IMG/VR virus record: IMGVR_UViG_3300044701_002789
Coordinates: 124,001-188,000 of that record
Length of the DNA stretch: 64,000 bases
Reading direction: 5' to 3' (one strand)
Part shown: piece after piece, positions 20,461-58,000 of the stretch
Position numbering within the stretch: position 1 is the stretch's first letter
Layout of the letters: each line of letters opens with the position of its first letter
The notes under the pieces: generated by a model
What the model saw: the letters and a program-made list of their open reading frames with translations, nothing else
The model's database searches: none
What the model was told of the DNA's origin: nothing
Position numbers and translations under genes: made by a program

Positions 20461-20471
20461 GTTGATTATAC

Positions 20472-21263: not shown

Positions 21264-21340
21264 CGGTGTCTGCATGGGTTGGTTGCGACTGGATACAGTG
21301 TAGGGCATGAGAGGGCAGGATCGCTGCCCCCAGTGGACAC

Positions 21341-21930: not shown

Positions 21931-21940
21931 TAAGTTATAA

Positions 21941-22261: not shown

Positions 22262-22329
22262 GGGGTGAATCCCTCAGGAACAGATCTAAGATAGCAGGGG
22301 GAGGGGGGGTTTCGCAACCCCCCGGTGTG

Positions 22330-22635
22330 TCAGTTGTCGGATTGGTCGGATTGGTCGGATTGGTCGGATTGGTCAGACCGGACCAGGATAGCAGCGACCA
22401 GGCGGTCCCGCTTGCGGATCGCGGTGGGAACCATTTCCCACTTGTGACGCTTGCCATTGGCGCTACGGGTGGCGCTCAGGATGCCTGCATCCTCCATGTC
22501 CACCATCAGGGCATGGATGGTGCCCTTGTGACGCTTCGGGTCCAGTCCCAGATCCCGCACCAGTTCGGAGCAGGTCTTAGAACCGGTCTGAATCAGGTGG
22601 GAGCGGATGCTGGTGCGGATGATGCTGGAAAGCAT
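22330..22635 (-). CDS. Putative winged-helix DNA-binding protein
   Basis: TCSELVRDLGL...TIHALMVDMEDAGILSATR...HKWEM pattern fits wHTH. Confidence 0.55.
   Translation of the reverse strand: MLSSIIRTSIRSHLIQTGSKTCSELVRDLGLDPKRHKGTIHALMVDMEDAGILSATRSANGKRHKWEMVPTAIRKRDRLVAAILVRSDQSDQSDQSDQSDN
22333..22372 (+). repeat. 9-bp tandem repeat (GTCGGATTG) x about 4
   Basis: Directly visible; encodes SDQSDQSDQSD. Confidence 0.95.
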
Positions 22636-22743
22636 GGGGTGTTCGTGTGAACTGAAAGAATCATAGGGCATGGGATGCCACCAGGCAACCACTCCTGACC
22701 AGTTCCCAAACTGGCACACCAGACCCCACACCTGACCCCATCC

Positions 22744-28597: not shown

Positions 28598-29431
28598 ATG
28601 AAAACAGGAACGATTTACTGTATTACAAACATTTCCAATGGTAAACAGTACATTGGTCAAACCAAACATGAATTGAACAAAAGATGGAAAGAGCACTTAT
28701 ATGAATCTAAGAAGTATAATACCAGACCTCTTTACAGAGCATTAAACAAATACGGTACTGATTCTTTCAAGATAAGAATACTAGAAGAATGTCCTATAGA
28801 AAAATTAAATGAAAGAGAAACTTATTGGGTTAATAAGTTAGATACTTACCACAACGGATATAATGCTACTTCAGGTGGAGATCATTTTGAACATGCAGAA
28901 GAAAATAAGATAAAAATATCCAATGGAATGTCTAATGTGGAGAGAACTGATGAATGGACCAATAATGTATCTAAAGCATTGAAGAACAAAATTAAAAATG
29001 GAGAACTATGGGGCATTCTTACTGGAAAATATAGCAATACGGATAAATTAAAACGTAAAGTGAAAGCGATTAAATTAGAAACCGGAGAAGAGTTTATATT
29101 TGATAGTATGCGAGAAGGTGCAAGAGAACTTACTGGAAATGTGGCAAATAGTGGAAATATATGCAGATCAATAAAGGAAGGATTTACTGTATATGGATAT
29201 AAGTGGGAAAAACTGGATCAGACTCCAACAAAAAGACCAGTAATAGGTGTCCATAAACGAACAGAAGAAATTGTTAGATATGATAGCATGAGATCCGCTG
29301 CTTACGATTTAACTGGCGAATCAAGAAAAGCGGGTGGTGGTTTACGGAAAAGTGTGTTAAATCCAGGAAAGAATAGTTGGATGGGTTATTATTGGTATTA
29401 TGAAGAAGAATACAATCCAGAAGTTCAATAA
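28598..29431 (+). CDS. GIY-YIG homing endonuclease with two NUMOD1-like domains
   Basis: GTIYCITN...KQYIGQT...RWKEH...E..W...GYN; two FDSMR.AA modules; only long plus-strand gene. Confidence 0.9.
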   Translation: MKTGTIYCITNISNGKQYIGQTKHELNKRWKEHLYESKKYNTRPLYRALNKYGTDSFKIRILEECPIEKLNERETYWVNKLDTYHNGYNATSGGDHFEHAEENKIKISNGMSNVERTDEWTNNVSKALKNKIKNGELWGILTGKYSNTDKLKRKVKAIKLETGEEFIFDSMREGARELTGNVANSGNICRSIKEGFTVYGYKWEKLDQTPTKRPVIGVHKRTEEIVRYDSMRSAAYDLTGESRKAGGGLRKSVLNPGKNSWMGYYWYYEEEYNPEVQ

Positions 29432-30051
29432 GAAGACAATCTTATTCTATTGGATGTGTCTATACCTCTTGCTTTTTGATAATGCGAAAGAGAACCAGCA
29501 TTTGTAATAAATCCAGTTACAGTACATTGCCATTTTATTGAGGATGCTTTTCTTGCTACCTCACTTCGTTGTTCAGGAGTTCTACTGGCATTTGCTTTTC
29601 TTGCTACCTCACTTCGTTGTTCTGGTGTGCTTGTAGAAAGATATACTTCTCTTGCTTTTCTTGCTACCTCACTTCTTTGTTCAGGAGTTTTATTTGCTTG
29701 TCTTTTTCTTGCTGCCTCACTTCGTTGTTCAGGAGTTCTACTGGCATTTGCTTTTCTTGTAATTTCACTTCTTTGTTCAGGAGTTCCCCAATTAGAAATA
29801 CCATCACCACCATCAGTCATATTATGAAGAATACCAGTTCCCAAATCTTTTCTACCAAACACAGCAATCATATAGATTTCGTGCTTGAATGCTTCTTCTT
29901 CAGTTAAGTTTTGCTTGAGGAAGATGATTCGTGACTTATCTTTGGGTGGTTTTACTCTTTTACATGTAGAATAAATCCTATTTCTTTTACCTTTACCAAT
30001 ATAATAAGGCGTTTGATCTTCTCTCAAATAAGCATAAGTGTAATAGTTCAT
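29425..30051 (-). CDS. GIY-YIG-type endonuclease with TPEQRSE repeats
   Basis: YYTYAYLREDQTPYYIGKG...RI; five TPEQRSE.ARK repeats. Confidence 0.8.
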   Translation of the reverse strand: MNYYTYAYLREDQTPYYIGKGKRNRIYSTCKRVKPPKDKSRIIFLKQNLTEEEAFKHEIYMIAVFGRKDLGTGILHNMTDGGDGISNWGTPEQRSEITRKANASRTPEQRSEAARKRQANKTPEQRSEVARKAREVYLSTSTPEQRSEVARKANASRTPEQRSEVARKASSIKWQCTVTGFITNAGSLSHYQKARGIDTSNRIRLSSY

Positions 30052-33038: not shown

Positions 33039-33085
33039 AGTATAACACCTCCCAGGTGCTCCGGGAGGTGTGAGTGTGACGGTTT
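33039..33085 (-). promoter_or_regulatory. Dyad/hairpin early promoter (repeat copy 1)
   Basis: AAACCGTCACA-30 nt-TATACT; 9-bp inverted repeat. Confidence 0.8.
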
Positions 33086-33086
33086 C

Positions 33087-33389
33087 TCAAGTGTCGGTAG
33101 AGAAAGGTTCAATCTCATCATCATCCATTGGTTCTACATAATCCAAAATCACATTTTCAGGTCTTTTAAAGTCAAAAGATTTGATAATAGCATCAGGGAC
33201 TACATCCAACAACCAATCGCCAAATGCATCTTCACAAGAAATGTCTTGTTCTTCACGACCTTTGGGATTATAAAGAACAATAAATTGAACTTTGTATCCA
33301 CGAAGTCCTTTTTGGGAATTATCGTATTCCTCAATTTGTCTTTTCAAATTTTGAACTTCCTCATAAGAAAGTTTTGAAACGTCAATCAT
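33087..33389 (-). CDS. Hypothetical protein
   Basis: Flanked by two near-identical promoters. Confidence 0.75.
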   Translation of the reverse strand: MIDVSKLSYEEVQNLKRQIEEYDNSQKGLRGYKVQFIVLYNPKGREEQDISCEDAFGDWLLDVVPDAIIKSFDFKRPENVILDYVEPMDDDEIEPFSTDT

Positions 33390-34895: not shown

Positions 34896-35627
34896 TCACT
34901 TCTTTAGAGTTGGCATCAGACGCAGACCATCACGGAAGATGGCATCTTGAACTCTAATGTTGATATTATTCAACATTTGTAGAGTCCATCGAGTATCTGC
35001 AAGAAACATTTTTTCAAGTTCCTCACGAATACGCTCAACAGAGACTTTCATCAACATATCTGCTGCAAAGTCACTATTGATTGCTTCCCAAGTATCTGCA
35101 TCAATATCAAAGTTTTTGGTAACAGCAAACCGAAGTGCTCGCATGACTCTCAAACCATCTTCTTCGATTCGGTCAATAGGATTGCCCACAAACCGAAGAA
35201 TAGCGTCCTGAATATCAGCAAACCCATTGAAAGGATCAATCAGTTTCCCATCCAGAATTGCCATAGCATTGACAGTGAAATCCCGACGTTGAAGATCATC
35301 CATCAGAGTACCAGGAAGTACAAAATCAGGATGCCGACCATCACTACTCGGACCATCTTTCCGAGCAAGTACAAAATCAGCAACATTGGTACGTTGCTTC
35401 AGAGGATGACCGTCAGGAACTTGTGCCCGAACAGTGAAGAACTCAGGAGTTTCCAGGAATACTTTGAACCCCTTTAGTTTCAGATGAATGCAAAGAGTAG
35501 TAAATGCAGCATTTGCATCTACAAAAACACTGGTATCTTCGGGAATCGCAACAAAATCTACATCTTTGGATTCCAGACCAAGAAACTTGTCTCGGACTGC
35601 ACCACCGACTTCTGCGAATTGAAACAT
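34896..35627 (-). CDS. tRNA nucleotidyltransferase / poly(A) polymerase family (class II) enzyme
   Basis: VGGAVRD...KDVDF, DDLQRRDFTVNAMA, DPFNG, EDGLRVMRALRF. Confidence 0.93.
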   Translation of the reverse strand: MFQFAEVGGAVRDKFLGLESKDVDFVAIPEDTSVFVDANAAFTTLCIHLKLKGFKVFLETPEFFTVRAQVPDGHPLKQRTNVADFVLARKDGPSSDGRHPDFVLPGTLMDDLQRRDFTVNAMAILDGKLIDPFNGFADIQDAILRFVGNPIDRIEEDGLRVMRALRFAVTKNFDIDADTWEAINSDFAADMLMKVSVERIREELEKMFLADTRWTLQMLNNINIRVQDAIFRDGLRLMPTLKK

Positions 35628-35894: not shown

Positions 35895-35930
35895 ACCCCT
35901 GAAGGTCCCCCTGTGACAGTTTAGAAAGTG

Positions 35931-36158
35931 TCAATCAAAAGTCTTGACGACTTCTTGTTGAACAGGAGAATTTCCTTTGATTCTATTTTGAATCCACTCT
36001 TCAACTTCTTTAACATCTGCGTCTGAAGCATTCCAGGTATCTACAAAAGGATCATAGTTACAATCAATCCAGATACCAAGCACATTCATTTGGGCATAAT
36101 ACCATTCCCTACGACTTCCGTTAGGTGCTTGATCACGACGAACGATACGATACTTCAT
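35931..36158 (-). CDS. Hypothetical protein
   Basis: Own dyad promoter. Confidence 0.75.
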   Translation of the reverse strand: MKYRIVRRDQAPNGSRREWYYAQMNVLGIWIDCNYDPFVDTWNASDADVKEVEEWIQNRIKGNSPVQQEVVKTFD

Positions 36159-36240
36159 AGGTTCAATTTGTTTACTAACCTATCATAGAGCATTTGGGGA
36201 GACATGTAAAGTGGGGGTTGTGACAGTTTTGAAGGTGTCC

Positions 36241-36906
36241 TTATGCTATTCTTTCTCTTTTGGAAGTATCTATACCTTTTGCTCTCTGATACATTGTAAG
36301 TGCTCCTGCATTTGTAATGTAACCAGTTTCTAGACATTTCCATTTTTGGGAATTTGTTTTAATGGATCCGAGTTTACCTGCTTTTGATCCATATTTTTTG
36401 CCATTTTCTATTCTTTGTTCTTTAGTGAGACCGCATATTCCAATTTTTCTATCTTTACACATTTGTCCTACTTTTTCCCCCACCATTTTTCCTCCAATTT
36501 TACCACCTATTTTACCACCTTTTCTACCATTTTCACTTAATTGTTCTTTGGTCAAAGAATGAACTCCTATTTTAAGTTCTGCTGCCCTTTTTCCATGCTT
36601 CAATCCACTTCTTCTACAAACATCCAAAGAAAATTTTCCACCACATCTTTGGTTTAAGCACAAAGGATCATTTAGAAATGGTCTAATTAACCGTTCCTCA
36701 ACTTCCCTACATTCAATATACCCTTTATCACTATACTCAAAAAATTGAAGTATCTGTTTCTTTGGAGTATAGAATTTCCAACACCACTTATGAGTTGTGG
36801 GAGATCCCCAATATTCTTGATTATAATACTTTTCTTTCTTACTACCATAATAGTAATAAGGAACCTCTTCAAAGGTAATCTTGTATGTATAAATGCGTGG
36901 TTGCAT
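36241..36906 (-). CDS. Seg-like GIY-YIG endonuclease
   Basis: RIYTYKI...YYYGSK...YWGSP...REVE..LI...LN; late promoter TATAAATA at 36942-36935. Confidence 0.75.
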   Translation of the reverse strand: MQPRIYTYKITFEEVPYYYYGSKKEKYYNQEYWGSPTTHKWCWKFYTPKKQILQFFEYSDKGYIECREVEERLIRPFLNDPLCLNQRCGGKFSLDVCRRSGLKHGKRAAELKIGVHSLTKEQLSENGRKGGKIGGKIGGKMVGEKVGQMCKDRKIGICGLTKEQRIENGKKYGSKAGKLGSIKTNSQKWKCLETGYITNAGALTMYQRAKGIDTSKRERIA

Positions 36907-37025: not shown

Positions 37026-37838
37026 TTATTTATCAGTGGGGAAAAACTGAAGAGGAGTACCGTTCACGATTAGGATTTTCTGAATACTTCCATTATTGAA
37101 AGCCGCCTTCAAAATCTCATTTCTCTGGTACTCAAGAGATTGTGCCGATACAGTAGATGCAAGTGCTTTATTTTCCTCTGCCTTGAGTTGAGCAGTCTGA
37201 GTTTTAACTTGCTGTTCTTTATTTGCACTCTGAGCAGCAACCACACGATTTACGGCAGCAACCAAGTCTTCGGGTAGGTCTGCTTTCACAACAACCACAG
37301 ATTCAATTTGAATTTTACCTGCAAGATTGTTCTTTTCTAAAGACAGATTCAGGTTATTCTTGATTGTGTCTTGGATCTTATCAAGACTGGAATTTACTTC
37401 CAGTGCAGGATATTCATCGACTGATTGATTCACCGCAGAAGTAATCAAACGCTTAATGAAACTAGACATTAGTTCAATTTGACCATTTTGACTGACTCCA
37501 TGGTTACTCATGTCGTAACCAGTATAAAAGTCATAGAGACTCGTGGGTGACAGACTATAAGTAACAACAACATCCATATCTTTCATAATGGTGTTGTCTT
37601 TGGTTTTAGGGGTCAGGTCATTTGATTGAACTGTAATTTTACGAGTGTTGAAGACCTTAATTGAACCAAATCCATCATATCGGATTCCTGGCTGAATAAT
37701 CTCATTCTTTACCTGGCCATCGAATCCGATGTATAATCCATTCTCCCCAGTATTGACCGTAGTAAATTGACCAGCAGTGAGAATAAGGGCAAGGGCAGCA
37801 GCACCAACACCCAGAGCAATTTTAGGACCAGCAGACAT
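37026..37838 (-). CDS. SPFH/Band 7 (prohibitin) family membrane protein
   Basis: N-terminal TM, TTVNTGENG, TKDN...MDVVVTY, C-terminal coiled coil. Confidence 0.85.
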   Translation of the reverse strand: MSAGPKIALGVGAAALALILTAGQFTTVNTGENGLYIGFDGQVKNEIIQPGIRYDGFGSIKVFNTRKITVQSNDLTPKTKDNTIMKDMDVVVTYSLSPTSLYDFYTGYDMSNHGVSQNGQIELMSSFIKRLITSAVNQSVDEYPALEVNSSLDKIQDTIKNNLNLSLEKNNLAGKIQIESVVVVKADLPEDLVAAVNRVVAAQSANKEQQVKTQTAQLKAEENKALASTVSAQSLEYQRNEILKAAFNNGSIQKILIVNGTPLQFFPTDK

Positions 37839-37865
37839 AGTTAATAATTAAATAAAGGACAAAAA

Positions 37866-38027
37866 TTAATCAGAAGTTAAACCTGCGTAGATAAACGCAA
37901 TGGCAACGAAAAGAAGAAAGACGAGAGGCAGCATCTTCAGGAAGAAGAGTACGGGAAGTCCTCTCAGAAGGAGGATAAAGAGTAGGAGTGCGATTCCTAC
38001 TCCTACTCCGATGATGCGGACGATCAT
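37866..38027 (-). CDS. Small two-helix membrane protein
   Basis: Hand-translated MIVRIIGVGVGIALLLFILLL... Confidence 0.6.
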   Translation of the reverse strand: MIVRIIGVGVGIALLLFILLLRGLPVLFFLKMLPLVFLLFVAIAFIYAGLTSD

Positions 38028-38032
38028 ATCAT

Positions 38033-38227
38033 TCAATTATAGGTACAAAGTTGTGTCCAGCGACCATACTGAATTCCTTCAGACCATTTACCACCTTGAG
38101 AGATACATGATTCTTTGGATGGAAGAAGAGATTCCCCTTTAATTGCCAGTCCTAGAAGACTAAATGCAATACCAGCAAGAGCAAGTGCAATCATCAACTC
38201 TACGAGTGTAAATCCTTTGGATTTCAT
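38033..38227 (-). CDS. Prepilin-type N-terminal cleavage/methylation motif protein
   Basis: MKSKG|FTLVELMIALALAGIAFSLL. Confidence 0.8.
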   Translation of the reverse strand: MKSKGFTLVELMIALALAGIAFSLLGLAIKGESLLPSKESCISQGGKWSEGIQYGRWTQLCTYN

Positions 38228-38424
38228 TTGTTCAGTTCGCTGATGAAGTAAATTCCCAGGAGAACCGCGAGAATGGCAAGAATAATCAGAGCACTAATCC
38301 AAATGGGAGATAGAACCCAGATCCAAGGCCAATTGATATAACCAGTCAGTTTCAGACCAATAAACAGAATGGTGAGAAGACCAGTAAATCCAATACCACT
38401 AGAAGATGAAGAATTGTTAGACAT
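38224..38424 (-). CDS. Small phage membrane protein
   Basis: GIGFTGLLTILFIGLKLTGYINWPWIWVLSPIW, a common phage TM family. Confidence 0.8.
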   Translation of the reverse strand: MSNNSSSSSGIGFTGLLTILFIGLKLTGYINWPWIWVLSPIWISALIILAILAVLLGIYFISELNK

Positions 38425-38494
38425 TCGTTTCTTTGTTGATTACTTCGTAAGTTTAACCGATAAAGGGGCACCTGTAAAGTACCCCTGTGACAGT

Positions 38495-38890
38495 TCAGTT
38501 ACTGGCGCGGTTGCTCAGGGCAAGTTCAACACGCTCGTCAATCTTGGAGAGGATGTAGTTCTCAAGATGACTGTCAATATCGTTCTTGATCTCGTCCATG
38601 ACTTCACGCTTGATGGTAGGAATTTGGTAACGCTTGTGATAATTCAGGATGCGTGTGTAAAAACCACGATCGGAAAGAAATTCTTTTACCATGCGCTCAA
38701 CTTCAGATGCGCCAAGCATTTCAATTTGACGCGAACGAACTTCTTCATGCAGATAACTGATTGCAGTGAGAAGATTGTCAAGTTGAACCAGTTGCTCATT
38801 GACGTTCACTTGGGCAACTTCGTTAGCAACAGGAGTCTCAGTAGCGGTCATTTGGGTGGTTTCTTTGATGGTGGAAGTAACAGTGCTCAT
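38495..38890 (-). CDS. Helical/coiled-coil protein, last gene of Ubl operon
   Basis: Starts 2 nt after E1 stop. Confidence 0.75.
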   Translation of the reverse strand: MSTVTSTIKETTQMTATETPVANEVAQVNVNEQLVQLDNLLTAISYLHEEVRSRQIEMLGASEVERMVKEFLSDRGFYTRILNYHKRYQIPTIKREVMDEIKNDIDSHLENYILSKIDERVELALSNRASN

Positions 38891-38892: not shown

Positions 38893-39606
38893 TCAGGAAA
38901 CGGAGGTGGTAAGAGTACGAAGGTTGAAGAACATGCCGCTTTGCTGCGGATTGATCATTTCATCCAGGACGTTCTGGATGACCGACAGAGTGATTGCTGC
39001 CGCCATGAAGTTGGCAGAGATCAGTTGAGGGCGGGAGGGCGCCTGAGTGGCGCATGACCCCTTGTGAGGGACCGAATCTTCTGGGTTCTCAATGTTGGGA
39101 TACACCAGAGAAGGATTCAGACCGATGCTTTGACCACCGACACGTCCGAACCAAAGAGTTTGACCCTTGACAGTTTCAGTACCATCGGAATTGCCTGGAG
39201 TGATGAAGAAGAAGTCTTTATCTTCACAAGCAGAAGAAATAGCAGCGATAATGTCCTTGCGAGTCGCGTCATTGTCAACGGAACACACAATCATAGGGCA
39301 ATTGGACCTACGCAGAAGAGGAATGAAGGATGTCATAGAAATATAATCATCCTTGTAATCAACGTTAGACAGACCCTGGTAACTACAGAAGTCCATCATT
39401 GCTCGCGCTTTGTTGAGTCCAAGTTGCGCTTCGCCAACGATCTGGCGAGTCATGTTGCTTTCCTCAAACTCATCACCATCAATGAACACAACTTTGGCGT
39501 CCTTGGTGGAAGGATGATAGGCAACAAGACGGGCGAGAGGGGAGGAAATGTAACCTCCAGTACCTCCAACACCAATCACGAAAACATAATCAGGAGAAAA
39601 GGTCAT
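38893..39606 (-). CDS. E1-like (ThiF family) activating enzyme
   Basis: GVGGTGG, IDGDEFEESNMTRQ, NKA, VDNDATR, candidate catalytic Cys in GSCA. Confidence 0.92.
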   Translation of the reverse strand: MTFSPDYVFVIGVGGTGGYISSPLARLVAYHPSTKDAKVVFIDGDEFEESNMTRQIVGEAQLGLNKARAMMDFCSYQGLSNVDYKDDYISMTSFIPLLRRSNCPMIVCSVDNDATRKDIIAAISSACEDKDFFFITPGNSDGTETVKGQTLWFGRVGGQSIGLNPSLVYPNIENPEDSVPHKGSCATQAPSRPQLISANFMAAAITLSVIQNVLDEMINPQQSGMFFNLRTLTTSVS

Positions 39607-39675
39607 AGGTGGAATTGACTACAGATCAATAATAAGGGATGAGAGGGTGGTTTGGAAAGGATGTGTGTCAGTATC

Positions 39676-40764
39676 TCAACTGGCACACACGAAGGACTCG
39701 TCGAGTTGACCAATCAGATACCCTTCTGTAGAAACATACCACTGACGACCGACAGAATCTTCCATGGTCACGAAACCAAGATAAAGATCATCACCTCGTT
39801 GAATGCTGGAAGTGCGGGCAGGGACGATCATAACGTGCGGAAGTTGGGGGAGAGGTTTAAATCCTGCCATAAGCATGGTGAAGAATGCCTGAACATCCGT
39901 ATCTGCGGAGATCATGATTAGAGTATCATAACCGGCGCAAAGAAAGGTGTCATTCTCCAGTTTTTTAAACGATGTTTTCCTAGAACTGTGTTTACGCATA
40001 TCTTCACAATTGCTTGCAAAAGATTGCAGATTGAGAAGATCGTTATTTGTTTGGGAAGAAAAATAAGAAGTTGAGATCTCACGAAGATTCCTTGGTCGCG
40101 TATAATCATACTGATTATCGCTGGTGGTTACGCTTCCCCAACAAATAGGACCACCAAGATAACTTCCCCATTCACCACCGTAGACATTAGAAACCGAAAG
40201 TTTTTTAGTTGCAACTACTTGATTGTTGTCGTCAACTTTACCGGCACAAAGATATGCTGTGTCGTTAATTTTCTCAAAGAGAAGATCTTTATTATTATGA
40301 GAAATATGACATTCAAAAACCATATTGGAGACGCTCACATAATCGGCATCATTATCACTTTCATCATATACATTGCCCTCTGGACAAGTACCAACCCAGT
40401 GACGAAAGGGCCGCTGCCAACCAGCATAAAAAACGCTACATTCATTGATGTTTGGATCCCTGGCGATTTTTTCATAGGCATTCCAGTTAATATCAATGCC
40501 GTAAGGACCGTCTTCTACAATATCTGGATAAGTATCCATAATATATTGACGACTATTTCTACGACACCCGATACAATTGGATTCATAGAAACAATTGATT
40601 CGCTGAGTCTCACTATTGGCAACTTTGAACCTAGCAAAACCATTAGGCATCCATGCTTTCAGGCGAATCATATCAGGTTGAACCTGATAACTAATAAACT
40701 CAGACTGAGTAGGCAGAGAGTGAATATGAACTTTGGCGGGTTCGGTAGGAAAAATAGCAGACAT
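39676..40764 (-). CDS. Prokaryotic E2-like conjugating enzyme (Prok-E2_D / PRTRC-B-like)
   Basis: SNVY...GPICWGS and YFSSQTNNDL match the E2 family D pattern; operon context. Confidence 0.7.
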   Translation of the reverse strand: MSAIFPTEPAKVHIHSLPTQSEFISYQVQPDMIRLKAWMPNGFARFKVANSETQRINCFYESNCIGCRRNSRQYIMDTYPDIVEDGPYGIDINWNAYEKIARDPNINECSVFYAGWQRPFRHWVGTCPEGNVYDESDNDADYVSVSNMVFECHISHNNKDLLFEKINDTAYLCAGKVDDNNQVVATKKLSVSNVYGGEWGSYLGGPICWGSVTTSDNQYDYTRPRNLREISTSYFSSQTNNDLLNLQSFASNCEDMRKHSSRKTSFKKLENDTFLCAGYDTLIMISADTDVQAFFTMLMAGFKPLPQLPHVMIVPARTSSIQRGDDLYLGFVTMEDSVGRQWYVSTEGYLIGQLDESFVCAS

Positions 40765-41801
40765 CAGTTCACCTCCATGAGATCAAGTTCAAGTTCCGCT
40801 TCAATGTCGGAACAAATTTGGGTCAGAAGAGTCATCAGATTAGATTTCTCTTCAATGTCGCCACGATTTTGCTTCAGGAAATCAGTGATAGAATCTTCAA
40901 TGTTCCAGAGTTTGACTGTTTTTTTCTGGGCAGATTCAACAGCGTTCCAGTAATCATCAATTGATTCAAACTCAGTCCAATCAACAGAATCCTGATAATG
41001 GAAAGGATCCTTGTAGTTACTTTGAGTGTTCCTGGAAGTGGGAGGATTAAAACGACTGGGCGCCAGGAAATTGTTGGTGCGCTGTTTTTGACCCTGCCAG
41101 GTGTTGATAATTGTAGTAATCTTGGGTTTCTCAACAGTAACGTAACTCAGAACATCTTCATGATACGAAACATCATCAACAGGAGTAGCGTCAATCAGAT
41201 GGTTGTAATTAACTTTGAACCGACGACCACCAGCAACAACAGACGAAGCAATGGCATAAGACCGTTTGGAAATGTTGATAGAACCAACAACAAGGTGAAT
41301 GCCTGGATCGCCAAGTTCGTACTTGTCATCTGTTCCTGAGAAGAATGCTCCCATAGTGTTATGACTATGAGAAGAACCAACAGGAATCCAACCTACAGGA
41401 GGATATTGAGTAATAGGTTCACCCGTTTCAATATCAATTGCTTCATCAAAACTATCTACACGGACAGAAGCACCACTGACTTCTTGACGAGGAACCAGAA
41501 TACGATATTTGGAAGGATCTTCTTCATTGCGAAGAATACGAACCGAAACCTCAAGAGAAGCGGCAACCTTGTCCACATAGTAGAAGCAAAGTTGAACCCA
41601 TCGCTGCCAAAGATCCGCAGGAATCCTATGAATGTTTTCTTTCAGTTCAAAAGTTTTGAGATCATCATTATTGATGATCACATTTGCTTCAGGATCATCA
41701 ATAGGGCGAAGGTATTTGCCCCAACCACCAGTGTAGTATTCAAAACATCCGTCCCGAGGGGTACGAAGAATAGTCGGTTGCTCTTGGATTTCGGTCGTCA
41801 T
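40764..41801 (-). CDS. JAB/MPN metallopeptidase (deubiquitinase-like)
   Basis: E(VSV)...VPRQEVSGASV...SHSHNTMGAFFSGTDDKYE. Confidence 0.88.
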   Translation of the reverse strand: MTTEIQEQPTILRTPRDGCFEYYTGGWGKYLRPIDDPEANVIINNDDLKTFELKENIHRIPADLWQRWVQLCFYYVDKVAASLEVSVRILRNEEDPSKYRILVPRQEVSGASVRVDSFDEAIDIETGEPITQYPPVGWIPVGSSHSHNTMGAFFSGTDDKYELGDPGIHLVVGSINISKRSYAIASSVVAGGRRFKVNYNHLIDATPVDDVSYHEDVLSYVTVEKPKITTIINTWQGQKQRTNNFLAPSRFNPPTSRNTQSNYKDPFHYQDSVDWTEFESIDDYWNAVESAQKKTVKLWNIEDSITDFLKQNRGDIEEKSNLMTLLTQICSDIEAELELDLMEVN

Positions 41802-41829
41802 GATATTGTAAAGGTCAAGTAGTGGAGTA

Positions 41830-41851
41830 AACCTCCCCCGAAAGGGAGGTT
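41830..41851 (-). terminator. UUCG hairpin between Ubl and JAB (weak terminator or stabiliser)
   Basis: AACCTCCCT-TTCG-GGGGAGGTT then TACT. Confidence 0.5.
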
Positions 41852-41864
41852 GGGAAAATAGGGA

Positions 41865-42131
41865 TCAGAAACCCTTGTTTTCGGAAGTCACAGCACCACG
41901 AACAGTTTCGCCAGGACGCACGGTGGTTTCGCCAGGAACGATCTCGTTGTTGATCACATAGCGGTTGATGCGAGCAGGATCCACGCCAAGGTTCTCACCG
42001 TACTGGGAGAACAGTTGAGCAACGGTCTTGCCACGGTAGTTGTCGGGAGACACGCTGTAGGTTTCCTCGTTGACCACCAGGGTAACAGGAGCGGAAGCGT
42101 CTTGGGTACGAACGTTGTTGAGGAATTGCAT
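41865..42131 (-). CDS. Ubiquitin-like (beta-grasp) protein
   Basis: 88 aa; VTLVV...GKTVAQLF...INRYVIN...VRPGETV pattern; ends ENKG-F; first gene of E1/E2/JAB cluster. Confidence 0.75.
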   Translation of the reverse strand: MQFLNNVRTQDASAPVTLVVNEETYSVSPDNYRGKTVAQLFSQYGENLGVDPARINRYVINNEIVPGETTVRPGETVRGAVTSENKGF

Positions 42132-42199
42132 AATAAAAAAGGAAATGAAATGTAAAGGACAGGTGTTTGTCGGTTTGGTGTTTCCCTCACCGACCCCTT

Positions 42200-42258
42200 A
42201 AGAATACCACGGAATCCGCTGGGATGTCGTGGAGTGTGCCAGTCTTGTGATTGGCACT
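42200..42258 (-). promoter_or_regulatory. Dyad/hairpin early promoter of Ubl operon
   Basis: GTGCCAATCACAAGACTGGCACA-28 nt-TATTCT. Confidence 0.7.
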
Positions 42259-42345
42259 TGGGGCGGCGGTGGGGGTGCGTCCCTTGCCGATGAGATAAAT
42301 GTACCCCATGCTGCTGGGGTCATGCCTGTTCAGTAGACAGTCAGA

Positions 42346-42583: not shown

Positions 42584-44539
42584 TTAATCGCCCACAATAA
42601 TAAATGGCGCGATAACAAATTTTGATATTGCATTTTTTGTGAATTTTTGTTTCTTAATTTTATCATATAAATCTGGATCAAATAATTTTCCACCTTTTTT
42701 GGACACTAATCCATATATTGTTAAAACTATTTGTTTTTTTAATATTTCATTTAAAAGATTTGGTCCACCCTTAACAAACATATAAAATGCTTGAAGTTTT
42801 GAATACTTTTCCTCTAAGTATTTAATGGTTTTGTTTTCACTTCCTTTAATTTTACTCAAATCTTTAGCGGAAAGTATGTTAGTTACATATGGATCTAATA
42901 TGAATAATTTTATTTTATCTTTTGATCCTTTTTCTATGGGTTGTGTTAATGTTATTGTTTTGTTTTTGGTATCTATTGATTCAATTTTTGTACCAGTTTT
43001 AAGTTTAGCAGCGCCAGAAATAGCAAATACATAGTGCCCTTTTTTTATCTTTTTATCTATTTGACTTCCTGAAGTGAGAACATAGGGAAGAATCTTATCT
43101 CCTTTTTTTGTTGCAATTTCTACTCTAAGAGGAACTGCAATTTGATTCCTTTTTAAATTGGTAGTTATTGCTTTCACTTTTTCCCATACAAGACCTTCGG
43201 CATCATCCCATTTCATAATATATCGGTCAAGTTCAACTTTTGTTGTCAGTTTCAATGTTTCTTGTGAAGTTATTCCATATAGTTCTTTTATTCCTCTAAA
43301 GTCCTTAGATAATATTTGTATAGATTTTACCAAAAAATGTATATATTGATTGGTTGTTAATAAAGATTCGCGGATTGCACTAAGATCTTTGGTTTTATAA
43401 ATTAATTCATTTTTTGATAAAATATTGTTTACTTCATTAGGAATATCTGAAGATATATTTTTATATGCATCTATTCTCTTATCTATTACTTCTTTAAATA
43501 TTGGTTTATATTGTTGATAATTTTCTAAAATTTGATGCACGCCATTCGTATTGAGACCCCCAGACCATGCAGTTCCTCCGATCTTTTGCATATTAAATGT
43601 ATCACCTGGAGTGTCTAATTTCCATTTTTCAATTCCACCACCTTCAATATCCACTCCTTCATAATTTAAGTGGAATATTAGATTTGGTTGCAAAACTTCA
43701 TCTTTGTAATTCAGTTTTTTAATATCAACTAGGTCTTCAATAAATTTCATTATTTTTGCTCTATTTCCTTCCTGCAAAACATTATCAAAAGCAAACACAA
43801 ATTTGGTATATGGATCAATGTCCATTTTATTGGATTCATAATTCATCATTGTACCCACAATTTTATATCCTATACCGATTGGTGAAGCTTTTGATATATT
43901 TTTATATTGTTCGTCTATTTTTAGACTAGCAGTACCAGATTTTTTTAGTGAAATTTGAAATAATTTTTTTCTAATAAAAAATCTGTTTATAATAGATTTA
44001 TATGTATTTTTGTTAGTAGTGTAGTTAGCAACTATATTCGCCTTTTTACTAATTATATGTGTCCCTAATTCTTTTCTGATATTGTTTTCTTGATTTTTAT
44101 CTACTATCCATATATCAGATGGGTTATATACATCAGGTTTATCTGAAATATTTTTTGTTTCTAGTGCAGTTACGATTTTCTTAATACAATCGTCTTTTAT
44201 AAGTTTACCAAATTTAGACTTTTGATGATGTATTTCAAAGTTTTTGTTTAATTTTAATTTTTGTATTAAAAATCTTGCAATATCTATTGAAGATCTAACC
44301 CAACTAACACCAGAAGGTTTTGATGTGTGAAATACGCCCAAATTTGTTTTAATATCATATTCCCCATGAACAGATTTCAAAATACTGTCCGGATCCTCTC
44401 CGTCAGCGAAGTTTTCTATATATGCAAAAAAATCTTTATTTTTAGCATTACTTTTATGAATAAAAAAACTAAGAGCAGCACATTGTAGTATTTCTTGATT
44501 AAAAGTATTTGTTGTGTAATTTTCTTTCAGTTTTGCCAT
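42584..44539 (-). CDS. Large AT-rich protein, possible PD-(D/E)xK nuclease
   Basis: YNPSDIW...QISLK motif; late-like AATAAATA upstream. Confidence 0.6.
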   Translation of the reverse strand: MAKLKENYTTNTFNQEILQCAALSFFIHKSNAKNKDFFAYIENFADGEDPDSILKSVHGEYDIKTNLGVFHTSKPSGVSWVRSSIDIARFLIQKLKLNKNFEIHHQKSKFGKLIKDDCIKKIVTALETKNISDKPDVYNPSDIWIVDKNQENNIRKELGTHIISKKANIVANYTTNKNTYKSIINRFFIRKKLFQISLKKSGTASLKIDEQYKNISKASPIGIGYKIVGTMMNYESNKMDIDPYTKFVFAFDNVLQEGNRAKIMKFIEDLVDIKKLNYKDEVLQPNLIFHLNYEGVDIEGGGIEKWKLDTPGDTFNMQKIGGTAWSGGLNTNGVHQILENYQQYKPIFKEVIDKRIDAYKNISSDIPNEVNNILSKNELIYKTKDLSAIRESLLTTNQYIHFLVKSIQILSKDFRGIKELYGITSQETLKLTTKVELDRYIMKWDDAEGLVWEKVKAITTNLKRNQIAVPLRVEIATKKGDKILPYVLTSGSQIDKKIKKGHYVFAISGAAKLKTGTKIESIDTKNKTITLTQPIEKGSKDKIKLFILDPYVTNILSAKDLSKIKGSENKTIKYLEEKYSKLQAFYMFVKGGPNLLNEILKKQIVLTIYGLVSKKGGKLFDPDLYDKIKKQKFTKNAISKFVIAPFIIVGD

Positions 44540-45301: not shown

Positions 45302-45369
45302 GGTTTTGTTGTGTCTTTGGTTATTATACCAAGTTTAGTGGACTGTTGGGTGTAATGTGTGACAGTTTA

Positions 45370-45621
45370 TCAACTGTCCTCGTCTGGTGTAAACTTACCA
45401 TCCTTAATCCAACCTTTTCTTCCTCCGCTAGTTGCACGAATGCCACGACCACGAGTTCTTTCGTGATAAAGTTCATCACTTCTTTGTCGCATTTTCGCTA
45501 TTTTTTCCTTTTCGCGCTTTGCTATTTCTTTCTCCATTCTTGCCTGCTCTTTTGAACTGCTCAAATCTATAAAAGTTGCTCTTTCAAGAATATCCATAAA
45601 GTCCTTAAAAGTCTTTTGCAT
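45370..45621 (-). CDS. Hypothetical protein
   Basis: Co-directional ORF. Confidence 0.7.
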   Translation of the reverse strand: MQKTFKDFMDILERATFIDLSSSKEQARMEKEIAKREKEKIAKMRQRSDELYHERTRGRGIRATSGGRKGWIKDGKFTPDEDS

Positions 45622-47379: not shown

Positions 47380-47625
47380 TCAAGACCCAGAGTGGGAAGG
47401 GTCTTGTGACGGTTCTTGAAGTGTCTCCAAATCATTTGAAAGAATACGAAGGTCCATAGAACTCACCACCATTCTCCCATAACCATCATCACCCATAAAC
47501 TCCTCATACTCGTCTATGATTTTAAGAATTGCAGTTGCGAGTGCTTCCCTCATATCATCTGTGGGTTCTTGTGTAAGTTCTCCACAAAATGCTTCCCATA
47601 CTACAGATGCTCTTGATTTAGTCAT
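47380..47625 (-). CDS. Hypothetical helical protein
   Basis: Coupled ORF. Confidence 0.65.
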   Translation of the reverse strand: MTKSRASVVWEAFCGELTQEPTDDMREALATAILKIIDEYEEFMGDDGYGRMVVSSMDLRILSNDLETLQEPSQDPSHSGS

Positions 47626-50708: not shown

Positions 50709-50865
50709 TAGTACCGAAAAGTTGATTGTAGTTATTCAAATATAACCAAAAGAAATGTCTATCACATTCAAAACTCTCATAAAATTCTGGTGAATTTTTC
50801 ATAAGTTTAACCCAACTATCAAAACACCAAGACCACATTATCCGTCTATACCAAAAGTTTTTCAT
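50680..50865 (-). CDS. Hypothetical protein
   Basis: Coupled ORF. Confidence 0.6.
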   Translation of the reverse strand: MKNFWYRRIMWSWCFDSWVKLMKNSPEFYESFECDRHFFWLYLNNYNQLFGTNDGFGNAND

Positions 50866-51404
50866 TGTCCTTTATGCTCCTTATCAAAAGGTGCTTTGAA
50901 GTAATGATTAGCAGAACTATGATACACCATTACACCTTCTGCATTCATAAATCCCGGAGAAGCAACAGAACCATAATTCCACAGTTTATCCATCACATCG
51001 TCAAGTGCATTTGTACTAAATTCACCTTGATAAAGAACCGGAACTACAGAACAACACTCGGGTGGTGGATTATCTTCGTTCCAGATGTTGGTATTGAAAA
51101 GAGAAAACCTTTTCTCACCTTTGGTAAGATTATAACCTCGTTGAATACCACTGCCCCACCACTCACCATGATGACGACCAGGACCAAGTTTCATAAGTTG
51201 GTCTTTGTTCTCCATTGACCAACGATGAAAACCAAAGTTATCACTCTCCACACTCAACCAACGATTACGAGAACCAACAAACATCTCACCATCATCGGTG
51301 ATGTAAATTACTCCATTGGTTCCGTCAATCTTTTCAGTAATGACGCATTCTTTATAGAGACGAGGAATTTTAGGAAAGGGAACGAATTCAGGGAGATTAG
51401 TCAT
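50862..51404 (-). CDS. RNA ligase (Rnl2-like nucleotidyltransferase domain)
   Basis: VITEKIDGTNG (motif I), SRNRW, DNFGF, GEWWGSGIQ, FSLFN, EGVM. Confidence 0.88.
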   Translation of the reverse strand: MTNLPEFVPFPKIPRLYKECVITEKIDGTNGVIYITDDGEMFVGSRNRWLSVESDNFGFHRWSMENKDQLMKLGPGRHHGEWWGSGIQRGYNLTKGEKRFSLFNTNIWNEDNPPPECCSVVPVLYQGEFSTNALDDVMDKLWNYGSVASPGFMNAEGVMVYHSSANHYFKAPFDKEHKGQ

Positions 51405-51484
51405 AAGGTTTTTTGCGTGTACGATACTACTATAACACAAAACCCCGAGTTACTCAAAGGGTCTTGTGACGGTTTCTTAAGTGT

Positions 51485-51721
51485 CTACTCCGGCACTCTA
51501 ATAAAATCCTTCACATTAGGAACAGAACCGCAAACTTTATTTGCATTTTCCTTTGCGACAATTCTACATGCAAGTATAGTTGTTAATGCTCTTTGGTAGT
51601 TCTCATAATTTCTTCGTGAATTTATGTGGTCAGAGACCTGAAAACCACCGGTTATGATACCAATGGTAACAAAAGAAAGAAAAATAAAAAATGTTTCGGG
51701 TTGATTAAAAAAATCCTTCAT
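51485..51721 (-). CDS. Small membrane protein (paralog of 56359)
   Basis: TM then YQ.AL.TI..CR...CG.VP. Confidence 0.7.
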   Translation of the reverse strand: MKDFFNQPETFFIFLSFVTIGIITGGFQVSDHINSRRNYENYQRALTTILACRIVAKENANKVCGSVPNVKDFIRVPE

Positions 51722-57916: not shown

Positions 57917-58000
57917 CGTGAGGTTTTTGTGTCTGTTTCCTTATGATACCACAAAATCCACCACCTCTCAAGAGGCAGTGTGCCAGTTAGTCAGGTGTCT

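Follow-up and report, generated by a model that had tools for sequence, protein, structure and literature searches.

The locus analysed here raises the question of whether a lytic T4-like phage encodes a ubiquitin-like conjugation pathway of its own. It lies in a window of 64,000 nucleotides (positions 124,001 to 188,000 of IMG/VR virus record IMGVR_UViG_3300044701_002789), in which an earlier note, made from the sequence alone, had read four contiguous genes as an operon for a ubiquitin-like protein (Ubl), a JAB protease, an E2 and an E1. Inspection of the ORF coordinates and their neighbours revealed five tightly packed genes on the minus strand in the order Ubl-JAB-X-ThiF/E1-G5:

41865–42131, minus strand: Ubl, 88 aa, predicted from an AF2 beta-grasp model, Foldseek and a conserved KG terminus
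40764–41801, minus strand: JAB/JAMM metalloprotease, 345 aa, from Pfam, NCBIfam and the JAMM residues
39676–40764, minus strand: protein X, E2-like candidate, 362 aa, from a profile link to Prok-E2_D and invariant N193 and C208
38893–39606, minus strand: E1-like ThiF-family adenylating enzyme, 237 aa, from Pfam ThiF, PRTRC_ThiF and a UBA5 alignment
38495–38890, minus strand: G5, 131 aa in the ORF list, conserved but without known function, found after ThiF in relatives

The four ORFs of the earlier note were confirmed at these coordinates, and its four protein assignments were each supported by an independent test. Every motif it had quoted was found, namely the TSENKGF end of Ubl, HSH...FFSGTDD in JAB, SNVY...PICWGS...YFSSQTNNDL in X, and GVGGTGG, DEFEESNMTRQ, VDNDATR and GSCA in ThiF. 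The count of four genes was incomplete, however, as it missed a fifth conserved member of the cassette, G5 (38890–38495). The JAB stop and the X start overlap in TGATG, and a gap of 2 nt separates the ThiF stop from the next ATG. The claim that ThiS/MoaD sulfur-transfer partners are lacking also held, with rhodanese, ThiG and MoaE absent from the scanned neighbours. The reported GC count of 32/60 at 41941–42000 was correct, but the wider claim of a GC-rich block held only in part: GC content is 44.8% in the cassette, compared with 28% in core structural genes and 36.4% in the whole window, yet it is uneven within the cassette (41–54%) and is matched or exceeded by 14% of equal-sized segments. 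Judged from its sequence, the cassette would comprise every part needed for attaching a small ubiquitin-like protein to other proteins, conjugation itself being an inference. The locus is likely best explained as a ubiquitin-like conjugation cassette of the phage itself, with the PRTRC operons as distant relatives.

The synteny survey of phage genomes that had been proposed was carried out, and the results showed that the five-gene order recurs in 15 independent phage-like contigs, with protein identities of 34–75% and invariant catalytic residues. That 15 loci share this gene set and its arrangement is far beyond chance. One related cassette, L033, encodes Ubl(...KKG-C)-JAB-Prok-E2_D-ThiF in the identical order. 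The carrier is indeed T4-like, as shown by a gp6 59% identical to that of Synechococcus phage B23 and by matches to baseplate PHROGs. About 24 kb separate the cassette from the baseplate genes; its surroundings are accessory genes in a variable region rich in homing endonucleases, and its neighbours in relatives resemble counter-defence or repair genes (ArdA, RNA ligase 1 and CCA-adding enzyme). Among 50,697 phage records, tblastn gave no match to X; the cassette was absent from the closest isolated relatives, and a ThiF search returned only 4 matches, all distant. No report of a phage version of the cassette was found in the literature searched.

The first component had been proposed to be a beta-grasp protein, and this fold is what modelling predicts: the AF2 model of Ubl (pLDDT 78) has the element order beta-beta-alpha-beta-beta-beta, and its Foldseek matches were NEDD8, SUMO, ubiquitin and ISG15 (prob 1.0, TM about 0.6, range 0.55–0.62). 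Ubl is the best conserved small component (48–72% identity). In 13 homologues its C-terminus consists of an invariant KG (K86, G87) followed by 0–2 variable residues, so that it ends in a single Gly and not in Gly-Gly. Because the residues after the invariant KG number 0–2 and vary, the comparison backs the earlier prediction that the extra Phe is trimmed; Ubl is predicted to mature via removal of F88, which would expose G87, the processing itself being inferred. Weak Pfam matches were obtained to ThiS and Ub-Mut7C, with ThiS weakly matched by 4 of 12 Ubl homologues. Neither Pfam nor NCBIfam gave a match of Ubl to Prok_Ub (PF14454) or PRTRC_C, and hhalign of the Ubl profile with the Prok_Ub/PRTRC_C profile was insignificant, the C-terminal KG being the only shared feature.

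JAB matched Pfam Prok-JAB (E 3.3e-5) with 24.2 bits, just under the cut-off of 25, and NCBIfam PRTRC_A (E 3.3e-5) with 23.5 bits against a cut-off of 101.8, the latter match spanning the JAMM motif only. An hhalign comparison with Azospira PRTRC_A gave E 9e-5 and a probability of 59%. The zinc site E...HxHx7Sx2D (E84, H145, H147, S155, D158) is invariant in 12 homologues, and the JAB assignment was upheld with its JAMM motif intact. The N-terminal domain of the protein is conserved and its C-terminal tail varies.

The E1 assignment held as well. The 237-aa protein passed the Pfam ThiF model (PF00899; 33.3 bits, cut-off 28.1), and its best NCBIfam match was TIGR03736 (PRTRC_ThiF; 47.3 bits, E 1.6e-12), which missed the cut-off of 144.75. 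Ten residues are invariant in 16 sequences (G12, G14, G15, G17, D45, N51, Q55, K66, D111 and R116), and R54 is nearly so (at least 90%). In profile searches the best PDB match was UBA5 (3.3e-12); like UBA5, UBA3 of the NEDD8-E1 (2e-11) is a conjugating E1, whereas ThiF (2e-7) and MoeB (7e-6) matched more weakly; the match to BubCD was also weak (2e-7). C185 is invariant, conservation of the E1 site residues extends to PRTRC ThiFs, and C185 aligns with the Cys of UBA5 'GVCAAS', the catalytic Cys250 of that enzyme. On the basis of this conservation and alignment, Cys185 is the candidate catalytic cysteine, its thioester chemistry being inferred. Directly 3′ of ThiF in nearly all related loci lies the fast-evolving G5 (21–45% identity), whose homologues suggest a true start at M14 (38851) and for which no match was found in Pfam, NCBIfam, PHROGs or PADLOC.

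In protein X, an E2-like core (about residues 142–260) is flanked by a four-Cys domain on the N-terminal side and a beta-rich one on the C-terminal side. None of its about 60 close homologues carries a Pfam domain, X itself did not match the Pfam Prok-E2_D model, and the close-family profile alone gave an insignificant hhalign result against PRTRC_B. The profile search gathered 162 clusters; Prok-E2_D (PF14460) was matched by 14 of 60 remote homologues, two of which (P0184 and P0193) exceed the gathering score. The superfamily profile aligned with that of PRTRC_B over 90 columns (hhalign, 86.6% probability, E 4.5e-6), and the X HMM cross-matched PRTRC_B, a Brasilonema plasmid protein and L033. 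Only two columns, N193 and C208, stay invariant across 60 diverse superfamily members; they correspond to N161 and C169 of PRTRC_B, both invariant within each family, and X keeps the Prok-E2_D pattern of an N-V-aromatic motif ahead of the invariant cysteine. According to Iyer 2006 (PMC1779556), a His that follows the Cys is conserved without exception in Prok-E2_D proteins; the aligned position of PRTRC_B H198 is N241 in X, where a conserved N240-N241-D242 replaces the His. The AF2 model of X was confident (pLDDT 87.7), but with E values of only 0.15 (PDB) and 0.12 (BFVD) at best, Foldseek matched it to no structure of any kind, and the listed entries included no UBC/E2. The UBC fold expected around the CWG cysteine was therefore not detected by Foldseek in PDB or BFVD, while the E2 assignment is supported by remote homology to Prok-E2_D/PRTRC_B, resting on remote profiles and bridging sequences only. 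The inferred secondary structure would be compatible with an E2 (a 4–5-strand meander at 141–185, an active-site loop, and helices 227–236 and 246–261).

The noncoding sequences around the genes carry the following elements:

42235–42257, minus strand: variant copy of a repeated, promoter-like module with an inverted repeat, GTGCCAATCACAAGACTGGCACA; the Ubl start is about 105 nt further 3′
42201–42209, minus strand: extended −10-like element, TGGTATTCT, from positional alignment in related loci
42180–42195, minus strand: conserved leader motif, GGTCGGTGAGGGAAAC, nearly invariant in 11 loci
42152–42162, minus strand: second conserved leader motif, CTGTCCTTTAC, kept across loci
41832–41849, minus strand: GC-rich stem-loop CCTCCC-TTTCGG-GGGAGG, directly 3′ of the Ubl stop, −14.3 kcal/mol
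39664–39686, minus strand: second module copy, GTGCCAGTTGAGATACTGACACA, sharing bases with the X stop codon; a TATTAT −10-like box comes next
38486–38506, minus strand: module copy of family D1, where the cassette ends on its 3′ side, before the following gene

The minus strand has 17 occurrences of the module core, compared with 0.66 expected, and related loci have counterparts 5′ of their Ubl gene. That the cassette shares this module with neighbouring genes, as had been claimed, was confirmed; the module is promoter-like, its function as a promoter is inferred and not shown, and its 'early' timing is likewise an inference. A TAnnnT element, often preceded by TG, aligned at the position of TGGTATTCT in 12 related loci, and the extended −10 reading is inferred only. 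Within the window GGTCGGTGAGGGAAAC is unique and CTGTCCTTTAC has one exact copy; no support was found for a conserved RNA structure at GGTCGGTGAGGGAAAC. In 10 of 12 related loci (11 of 13 loci) a strong hairpin stands at this point 3′ of Ubl, usually followed by a T-run and with differing stem sequences; it is likely an attenuator or terminator. In 12/12 related loci the X-ThiF spacer also carries the module with a −10-like box, and GTGCCAGTTGAGATACTGACACA could possibly serve as an internal promoter for ThiF-G5.

Comparison with known systems placed the cassette near the PRTRC operons, which are found on plasmids and ICEs and are uncharacterised; it is a divergent relative of these, specific to phages. 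Iyer, Burroughs and Aravind 2006 (PMC1779556) classed the PRTRC operons as type '6d' and described the same component set, the fast-evolving extra protein included. The reference models were NCBIfam TIGR03735-03742 and Pfam Prok_Ub, Prok-JAB, Prok-E2_D and ThiF. In both systems the Ubl is a small free-standing protein whose terminal KG may be followed by a tail, the JAB has an additional N-terminal domain, a Prok-E2_D-type protein bears a cysteine, ThiF is minimal (about 240 aa) and shares the invariant 'SC' cysteine, and one further protein evolves fast; both are carried on mobile elements and lack experimental characterisation. They differ in gene order (E-C-...-B-A-ThiF in PRTRC, Ubl-JAB-E2-E1-G5 here), in NCBIfam scores far under the cut-offs (47 vs 145; 23.5 vs 102), in a Ubl that is not Prok_Ub by sequence, and in the carrier, here a lytic T4-like phage. 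X is 110 aa longer than PRTRC_B, with its N- and C-terminal domains, and has Asn at the invariant-His position. ParB, PRTRC_E and PRTRC_F were not found among the cassette proteins or scanned neighbours, and ParB and PRTRC_E were also absent from the called genes of the related loci. The PRTRC reference mechanism is itself a prediction, because no PRTRC-type system has been characterised biochemically.

A second phage-borne cluster was recognised in Bacillus jumbo phages (vB_BceM_WH1 gp214-gp216; Edson, KLEB27-3), where E2-like, JAB and ThiF genes are unannotated as a set, their GenBank labels being a ThiF-family enzyme and hypothetical proteins only. In vB_BceM_WH1, gp214 matched the X-superfamily HMM (5.5e-9), gp215 the JAB HMM and gp216 the ThiF HMM (1e-23). 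The cluster differs in its order (E2-like, JAB, ThiF), in a ThiF identity of only 25–29% and in Gram-positive hosts, and no Ubl homologue was detected in it with the phage Ubl HMM. As a side observation, an SPFH gene lies near the cassette in the window, as one also does near the Bacillus jumbo phage cluster.

The eukaryotic UBA5-UFC1-UFM1 pathway, with its minimal non-canonical E1, is similar in having a single adenylation domain that holds the catalytic cysteine and a modifier whose single terminal Gly is exposed via trimming. It differs in that no relation between X and UFC1 is detectable and that the cassette deconjugase is a JAB and not a cysteine protease, in a prokaryotic-viral setting.

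Bil, Bub and type II CBASS Cap2/Cap3 are bacterial E1/E2/Ubl/peptidase sets with real protein conjugation (PMC11601603, PMC11601596, PMC10557695). PADLOC models for Cap2 and BilD were weakly matched by the ThiF N-terminus (BilD E 9e-4, Rossmann part only), while Ubl, JAB and X had no PADLOC match and no homologues of BilA, BilB or BilC were found. The Bil E1 comprises IAD, AAD and a mobile CYS domain, in contrast to a single 237-aa domain here; Bub (6E/DUF6527) uses oxyester (Ser) E1/E2 chemistry and the Ser-His BubE protease, in contrast to invariant cysteines and a JAB; and Cap2 of CBASS is an E2-E1 fusion acting on a CD-NTase, neither of which is present. Identity with Bil, Bub or CBASS was rejected, since architecture, chemistry residues and protease differ and the PADLOC matches indicate a generic E1 only. 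Of the kinship with 'PRTRC-type and Bil/Bub' systems that the earlier note had claimed, the PRTRC part held and the Bil/Bub part failed.

Our proposed mechanism is inferred in every chemical step, in the transfer order and in its targets. With its gene in first position and the hairpin directly after it, Ubl would probably be made in excess over the enzymes. JAB would trim the one-residue tail F88 to expose Gly87, which the minimal UBA5-like E1 would adenylate before loading Ubl on Cys185 as a thioester. Ubl would then move to Cys208 of the E2-like X, whose active site may consist of Asn193 and the N240-N241-D242 motif, and whose N-terminal four-Cys and C-terminal domains would probably bind E1 and/or targets. 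Ubl would end up on lysines of host or phage proteins, identity unknown; JAB may also undo this attachment, and G5 would be an accessory factor of unknown role. As to biological purpose, host takeover or counter-defence is inferred to be the most likely because of the accessory-gene neighbourhood. The tagging or counter-defence role proposed earlier is still speculation, without target, E3 or expression data.

Several rival readings were considered. In E2-independent conjugation, E1 would ligate Ubl directly or via its own cysteine, as in archaeal SAMP/UbaA, and X would be a target, an adaptor or an unrelated Cys enzyme. In its favour, the modelled structure of X matched no E2 in the Foldseek searches, X is far larger than PRTRC_B with two extra domains, and the X-E2 link consists of remote sequence profiles only. 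Against it, N193 and C208, the sole invariant columns in 60 members, align with PRTRC_B N161 and C169, the remote X homologues are bona fide Prok-E2_D proteins, and X is strictly co-inherited with JAB and translationally coupled to it. We consider this reading unlikely.

Also improbable is inter-phage competition, in which the same chemistry would serve a phage-carried defence that tags proteins of co-infecting phages, not those of the host, as Bil tags tail proteins. Bil, the only experimentally understood stand-alone bacterial Ubl systems, do act in this way (PMC11601603; 10.1101/2023.09.04.556158), defence systems are often carried by phages and plasmids, and homing endonucleases abound in the variable accessory region around the cassette. 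However, PADLOC yielded generic E1 matches only, the architecture is unlike Bil (a minimal 237-aa E1, with BilA, BilB and BilC not matched), and in relatives the cassette neighbours what look like genes for counter-defence or repair (ArdA, RNA ligase 1, CCA-adding enzyme).

A sulfur-carrier pathway, in which the ThiF-like enzyme would thiocarboxylate Ubl like ThiS, MoaD, CysO or TtuB for cofactor or nucleic-acid thiolation, with JAB releasing the carrier as Mec+ does for CysO, is very unlikely. It could draw on the weak Pfam ThiS matches (4/12 Ubl homologues), on the ThiF family membership of E1 and on the known arrangement of a JAB with a sulfur-carrier operon (PMC1779556). ThiS/MoaD carriers, however, need a Gly-Gly end and an adjacent sulfurtransferase or synthase, whereas the C-terminus of Ubl is a single KG plus a variable tail and no partner genes were found, rhodanese, ThiG, MoaE, TtuA and cysteine synthase being absent from the cassette and scanned neighbours; moreover, the E1 profile is closer to UBA5/UBA3 than to ThiF/MoeB, and the conserved Cys-bearing E2-like protein would be left without a role. 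An aid to virion assembly like lambda tail-assembly proteins I and K (Ubl domain and JAB/NlpC peptidase), with Ubl as a cleavable chaperone and not a tag, has known Ubl plus JAB pairs in phage tail modules in its favour (PMC1779556) but can be all but dismissed, as the baseplate genes are about 24 kb away and the genes around the cassette are accessory ones, the closest isolated relatives do without it by the X and ThiF searches, and an E1 and an E2-like enzyme would be superfluous for assembly.

Returning to the conjugation cassette, a bolder reading, which we offer with slightly more doubt than belief, is that a lytic phage runs its own complete Ubl conjugation pathway during infection, covalently tagging host proteins or its own. 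Its aims may be to disarm host defence, to redirect host proteolysis or to shield virion lysines from host Bil-type tagging. Such systems have until now been predicted mainly on plasmids, with demonstrated function only in bacterial anti-phage defence. If true, the Ubl defence systems of bacteria would have a viral counterpart in this cassette, which would be the first Ubl cascade to be demonstrated in a virus of prokaryotes.

The observation made in the earlier note was confirmed, and the results supported a complete Ubl/JAB/E2-like/E1 cascade on a T4-like phage, with the reservation that the E2 part is supported by remote sequence homology and not by fold. All the motifs quoted in that note were found in the ORFs. 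Its four-gene Ubl-JAB-E2-E1 operon has a fifth member, the small protein G5, which had been missed. The cassette comprises the following ORFs:

42131-41865, minus strand, Ubl (ubiquitin-like protein), 88 aa
41801-40764, minus strand, JAB (JAB/JAMM metalloprotease), 345 aa
40764-39676, minus strand, X (E2-like candidate), 362 aa
39606-38893, minus strand, ThiF/E1 (E1-like enzyme), 237 aa
38890-38495, minus strand, G5, 131 aa

The JAB stop codon overlaps the X start codon in the sequence TGATG, and 2 nt separate the ThiF stop from the G5 start. The window comes from a T4-like myovirus, whose gp6 baseplate wedge protein (12862-14784) is 59% identical to that of Synechococcus phage B23; neighbouring ORFs matched baseplate, homing-endonuclease and RNA-ligase PHROGs, and IMG/VR viral genomes of 224-258 kb contain sequence identical to the window. 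A single 4053-aa ORF (699-12860) adjoining the baseplate wedge genes is presumed to encode a giant structural or fibre protein.

To describe the distribution of the cassette, its proteins were searched against several collections. About 60 homologues of X (34-47% identity) were found in a 5.8-billion-protein database, all of them unnamed and none with a Pfam domain, and their contigs (up to 247 kb, with phage-like content) carry neighbours matching those in the window. An IMG/VR scan revealed 10 more distinct viral contigs with cassette homologues, and the sole match in 185,579 species genomes was one 4-kb MAG fragment. The survey of phage genomes for synteny proposed in the earlier note showed by phmmer that the order Ubl-JAB-X-ThiF-G5 is kept in 15 loci wherever the contig extends far enough. 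Because the five-gene order is conserved and nearly all carriers are viral, the close cassette family is phage-specific and inherited as a unit. Identity to the window protein in the related loci was 58-75% for ThiF, 48-72% for Ubl, 51-61% for JAB, 34-49% for X and 21-45% for G5. Since E1 and Ubl stayed very highly conserved while the other genes of these phages diverged, it can be argued that both are under strong selection. Among 50,697 phage records, neither the cassette (megablast) nor X (tblastn) had any match. Ubl, JAB, X and G5 have no PHROGs family, and a PADLOC search of the cassette proteins returned generic E1 matches and nothing else.

Sequence matches of Ubl were weak (ThiS, E 0.006; Ub-Mut7C, E 0.004), and its profile gave nothing significant against PDB sequences or PRTRC protein C (Prok_Ub). 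The AlphaFold2 model, with 12 homologues in the input (pLDDT 78), showed the order beta-beta-alpha-beta-beta-beta that defines a beta-grasp, its C-terminal tail being disordered, and Foldseek matched it to NEDD8, SUMO, ubiquitin, ubiquilin and ISG15 (probability 1.0, TM 0.55-0.62, E down to 2e-4), so that the beta-grasp assignment held at the level of a predicted structure. A Lys-Gly pair near the C-terminus is invariant in 13/13 homologues; five end exactly there, and the other eight add one or two residues, represented by seven sequences (F, S, SY, LF, VY, LG and AA). The Ubl of a more distant cassette, L033, ends in ...KKG-C. PRTRC protein C likewise has a KG terminus with an optional tail. 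Such variable tails are typical of a modifier precursor whose Gly becomes exposed by trimming; the removal of Phe88 predicted in the earlier note is therefore supported by homologue comparison, and there is no experimental evidence for it. Because Ubl ends in Lys-Gly, it can be inferred that trypsin would cut it down to a single Gly (+57 Da) on each modified lysine, which would offer an immediate proteomic read-out.

The zinc site of JAB was recognised by Pfam Prok-JAB (E 3.3e-5, 24.2 bits, cut-off 25) and by NCBIfam PRTRC_A (E 3.3e-5), and hhalign against a PRTRC_A protein gave E 9e-5; the JAB profile had no match among PDB sequences. JAB has a perfect E...HxHx7Sx2D motif, made up of E84, H145, H147, S155 and D158, all invariant in 12 homologues. 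The N-terminal 110 residues are highly conserved too, with R13, W27, W65 and W68 invariant, and resemble the JAB-N domain of operon type 6d, which has a conserved Arg and Trp (Iyer et al., 2006; PMC1779556), yet homology could not be shown. ThiF scored above the Pfam threshold, with PRTRC_ThiF as the top NCBIfam match. The Gly-rich loop, D45, N51, Q55, K66, D111, R116 and C185 were invariant, and R54 nearly so, in an alignment that also took in three PRTRC ThiFs and one ThiF each from a Clostridium plasmid and a Bacillus phage. Against solved structures, the ThiF profile matched UBA5 (E 3.3e-12), the NEDD8 E1 UBA3 (E 2e-11), the SUMO E1 (E 3e-9), ThiF (E 2e-7) and MoeB (E 7e-6). The UBA5 alignment covers 'kkgsCaae' / 'REGVCAAS' and places C185 on the catalytic cysteine of UBA5, Cys250; for this reason we read ThiF, from sequence alone, as a minimal single-domain E1 with C185 as candidate thioester cysteine, the chemistry being inferred. 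Among plasmid proteins, the phage E1 was best matched by a lone ThiF on Clostridium argentinense plasmid pRSJ17_1 (34% identity, E 1e-24), which has DNA polymerase III subunit genes as neighbours and, within 6 kb, no homologue of JAB, Ubl or the E2-like protein.

The assignment of X is the critical one. X belongs to no family in Pfam, NCBIfam, PHROGs or PADLOC and had no phmmer match in PDB. Its structural model was confident (pLDDT 87.7, pTM 0.82), and Foldseek of the model gave nothing significant (best E 0.15 in PDB and 0.12 in BFVD) with no E2 among the matches; hence the canonical UBC fold expected in the earlier note could not be confirmed structurally with these two databases. A profile built from 41 homologues retrieved 162 clusters from 1.84 billion representatives. 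In a 60-member alignment with identity down to 15%, N193 and C208 were the sole invariant columns, and W209, G210, N240 and D242 were at least 90% conserved. Pfam Prok-E2_D matched 14 of these 60 superfamily members (best E 3.5e-9), and two remote homologues, P0193 (37 bits) and P0184 (27.9 bits), exceeded its 25-bit gathering score in the region that the X profile had matched. Aligned by hhalign with the PRTRC_B (Prok-E2_D) profile, the superfamily profile gave 86.6% probability and E 4.5e-6 over 90 columns, equating X 142-260 with PRTRC_B 122-218 and pairing N193/N161, C208/C169, G210/G171 and P224/P176. This link was obtained with the widened superfamily profile only; the close-family profile A1 was insignificant against both a single PRTRC_B and the PRTRC_B profile, and phmmer of PRTRC_B against the collected X homologues was marginal. 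HMM cross-searches further tied X to gp214 of Bacillus phage vB_BceM_WH1, the Prok-E2_D protein of L033 and a Brasilonema plasmid protein, the last of which the PRTRC_B HMM matched as well. The contigs of two remote homologues, P0094 and P0146, were too short for gene context. At the position of the invariant His of PRTRC_B (H198), considered part of the active site (Iyer et al., 2006; PMC1779556), X has Asn241 inside a conserved N-N-D. Unlike PRTRC_B, X also carries an extra N-terminal domain with four invariant cysteines (C64, C67, C109 and C127) and an added C-terminal beta-rich domain. The model places a beta-meander (141-185) before a long loop with N193 and C208 and then two helices, a predicted order compatible with an E2 core. 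X is thus best described as a divergent Prok-E2_D superfamily member by remote sequence homology, without structural confirmation of an E2 fold.

The component set of the cassette agrees with that of operon type 6d (Iyer et al., 2006; PMC1779556), in which a Gly-ended Ubl is joined by a JAB that has an N-terminal domain, by E1-like and Cys-bearing E2-like proteins and by an additional fast-evolving protein. This operon type was later named PRTRC. In an Azospira plasmid, the PRTRC genes run in the order E, C (Prok_Ub), two hypothetical genes, B (Prok-E2_D), A (DUF2016 and JAB) and ThiF. Because the phage cassette fell below every curated PRTRC threshold, lacks ParB, E and F, and differs in gene order and Ubl family, it is a sister family to PRTRC and not a member. 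Bil (multidomain E1), Bub (oxyester chemistry and a Ser-His protease) and CBASS Cap2/Cap3 (an E2-E1 fusion with CD-NTase) were excluded. In Bacillus jumbo phage WH1 (LC597490.1, 181723-184817), gp214-gp216 form an E2-like/JAB/ThiF trio adjoined by NADAR and SPFH genes; gp216, labelled a ThiF-family enzyme, is the only one of the three that GenBank names. The cyanophage-type Ubl HMM detected no Ubl there. The trio is a distant, unrecognised analogue of the cassette. No description of a phage-encoded version was found in the literature searched, in which bacterial operon families other than the characterised ones are still called uncharacterised.

The cassette is accompanied by a recurrent module, GACACTT-N5-AACTGTCACA, a 21-nt imperfect inverted repeat located in intergenic regions, of which the coding (minus) strand of the window has 17 copies where 0.66 would be expected. 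The copies at the cassette, and some of those beyond it, are:

42257-42235, minus strand, variant copy about 105 nt upstream of Ubl
39686-39664, minus strand, copy spanning the X stop codon
38506-38486, minus strand, copy just past G5
33075-33095, minus strand, copy beyond the cassette
35912-35932, minus strand, copy beyond the cassette
36219-36239, minus strand, copy beyond the cassette
45358-45378, minus strand, copy beyond the cassette
47405-47425, minus strand, copy beyond the cassette
51465-51485, minus strand, copy beyond the cassette
57979-57999, minus strand, copy beyond the cassette

A -10-like box follows the copies at Ubl and at the X stop, and across the window copies such a box usually stands 25-35 nt after the module; the X-ThiF copy is kept in 12/12 related loci. 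The module is likely a promoter or operator element of this phage lineage, its factor and timing being unknown; the shared promoter module claimed in the earlier note thus exists, and its 'early' class is not established. The region upstream of Ubl (42132-42345; 213 nt) is untranslated, with 52% GC. Two motifs in the stretch from the first module to the Ubl ATG, GGTCGGTGAGGGAAAC and CTGTCCTTTAC, are each unique in the window and nearly invariant in divergent related phages. A structured RNA in this leader was rejected (Rfam empty, RNAalifold -0.96 kcal/mol, zero covariation). Directly 3′ of the Ubl stop lies a hairpin of about -14 kcal/mol; 10/12 relatives have a strong hairpin at the same place, mostly followed by a T-run, with differing stem sequences. 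The hairpin is consistent with an attenuator, by which, it is inferred, the phage would produce more of the modifier than of the enzymes.

The GC content of the cassette is 44.8% overall (Ubl 54%, ThiF 48.5%, JAB and X 41-42%), compared with 28% in the core genes (gp6 and the giant ORF), 27% in the AT-rich gene upstream and 36.4% in the whole window. The elevated GC noted earlier holds in part: other accessory islands reach 57%, and 14% of windows of the same size equal or exceed the cassette in GC. A foreign origin of the block is plausible and unproven by GC alone. Directly upstream of the cassette region lies a 651-aa ORF (42584-44539, 27% GC) with no Pfam or NCBIfam match, and an island of about 57% GC (17800-22700) contains ORFs with unknown-function PHROGs or none. 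Homing-endonuclease genes interrupt relatives' cassettes in the Ubl/JAB or ThiF/G5 gap. Members of the phrog_314 homing-endonuclease-like family occur in the window (36241-36906, 28598-29431 and 29425-30051) and in L005, L008, L019, L022 and L024. Those inside relatives' cassettes suggest that an endonuclease drove the spread of the cassette. In three loci, a group I intron (RF00028, 55-63 bits, gathering score 50; L019:3152-3392, L020:3157-3397 and L028:2942-3178) interrupts the JAB gene precisely at the junction of His147 and Asn148 in the JAMM motif; the window JAB gene has no intron.

Just downstream of the cassette (37026-38424) are an SPFH/Band-7 protein (E 2.6e-19) and three tiny membrane-type ORFs; a prepilin-type N-terminal methylation motif (PF07963, E 3e-8) is present in one of the three. 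An SPFH gene lies near the cassette or ThiF in the window, L026, phage WH1 and a Ralstonia PRTRC plasmid; being absent or placed differently in most relatives, it was treated as neighbourhood and dropped as a component. The accessory genes around relatives' cassettes encode ArdA, a CCA-adding enzyme and RNA ligase 1, the last accompanied by a kinase and a phosphatase. The window itself has a CCA-adding/poly(A)-polymerase-family enzyme and an RNA ligase (34896-35627 and 50862-51440), and in L008 a T4 Rnl1 with kinase and phosphatase adjoins the cassette. This gene content suggests that a tRNA-repair (anti-anticodon-nuclease) toolkit shares the accessory region with the cassette.

The mechanism of the cassette is inferred from homology, and its targets and biological purpose are unknown. 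Inter-phage competition is the main alternative for that purpose; host takeover or counter-defence remains the leading guess, on account of the accessory genes of the relatives. Bacterial Ubl conjugation has recently been proven real in CBASS Cap2, Bil and Bub, always for defence, and PRTRC-type operons, predicted in 2006, are still untested. With the cassette, the four components are all found with the attacker, a family of large T4-like phages. Since it is compact (Ubl of 88 aa, E1 of 237 aa and a single E2-like protein), the cassette presents a tractable model for PRTRC-type chemistry and for the question whether bacterial viruses use protein tagging in takeover or counter-defence.
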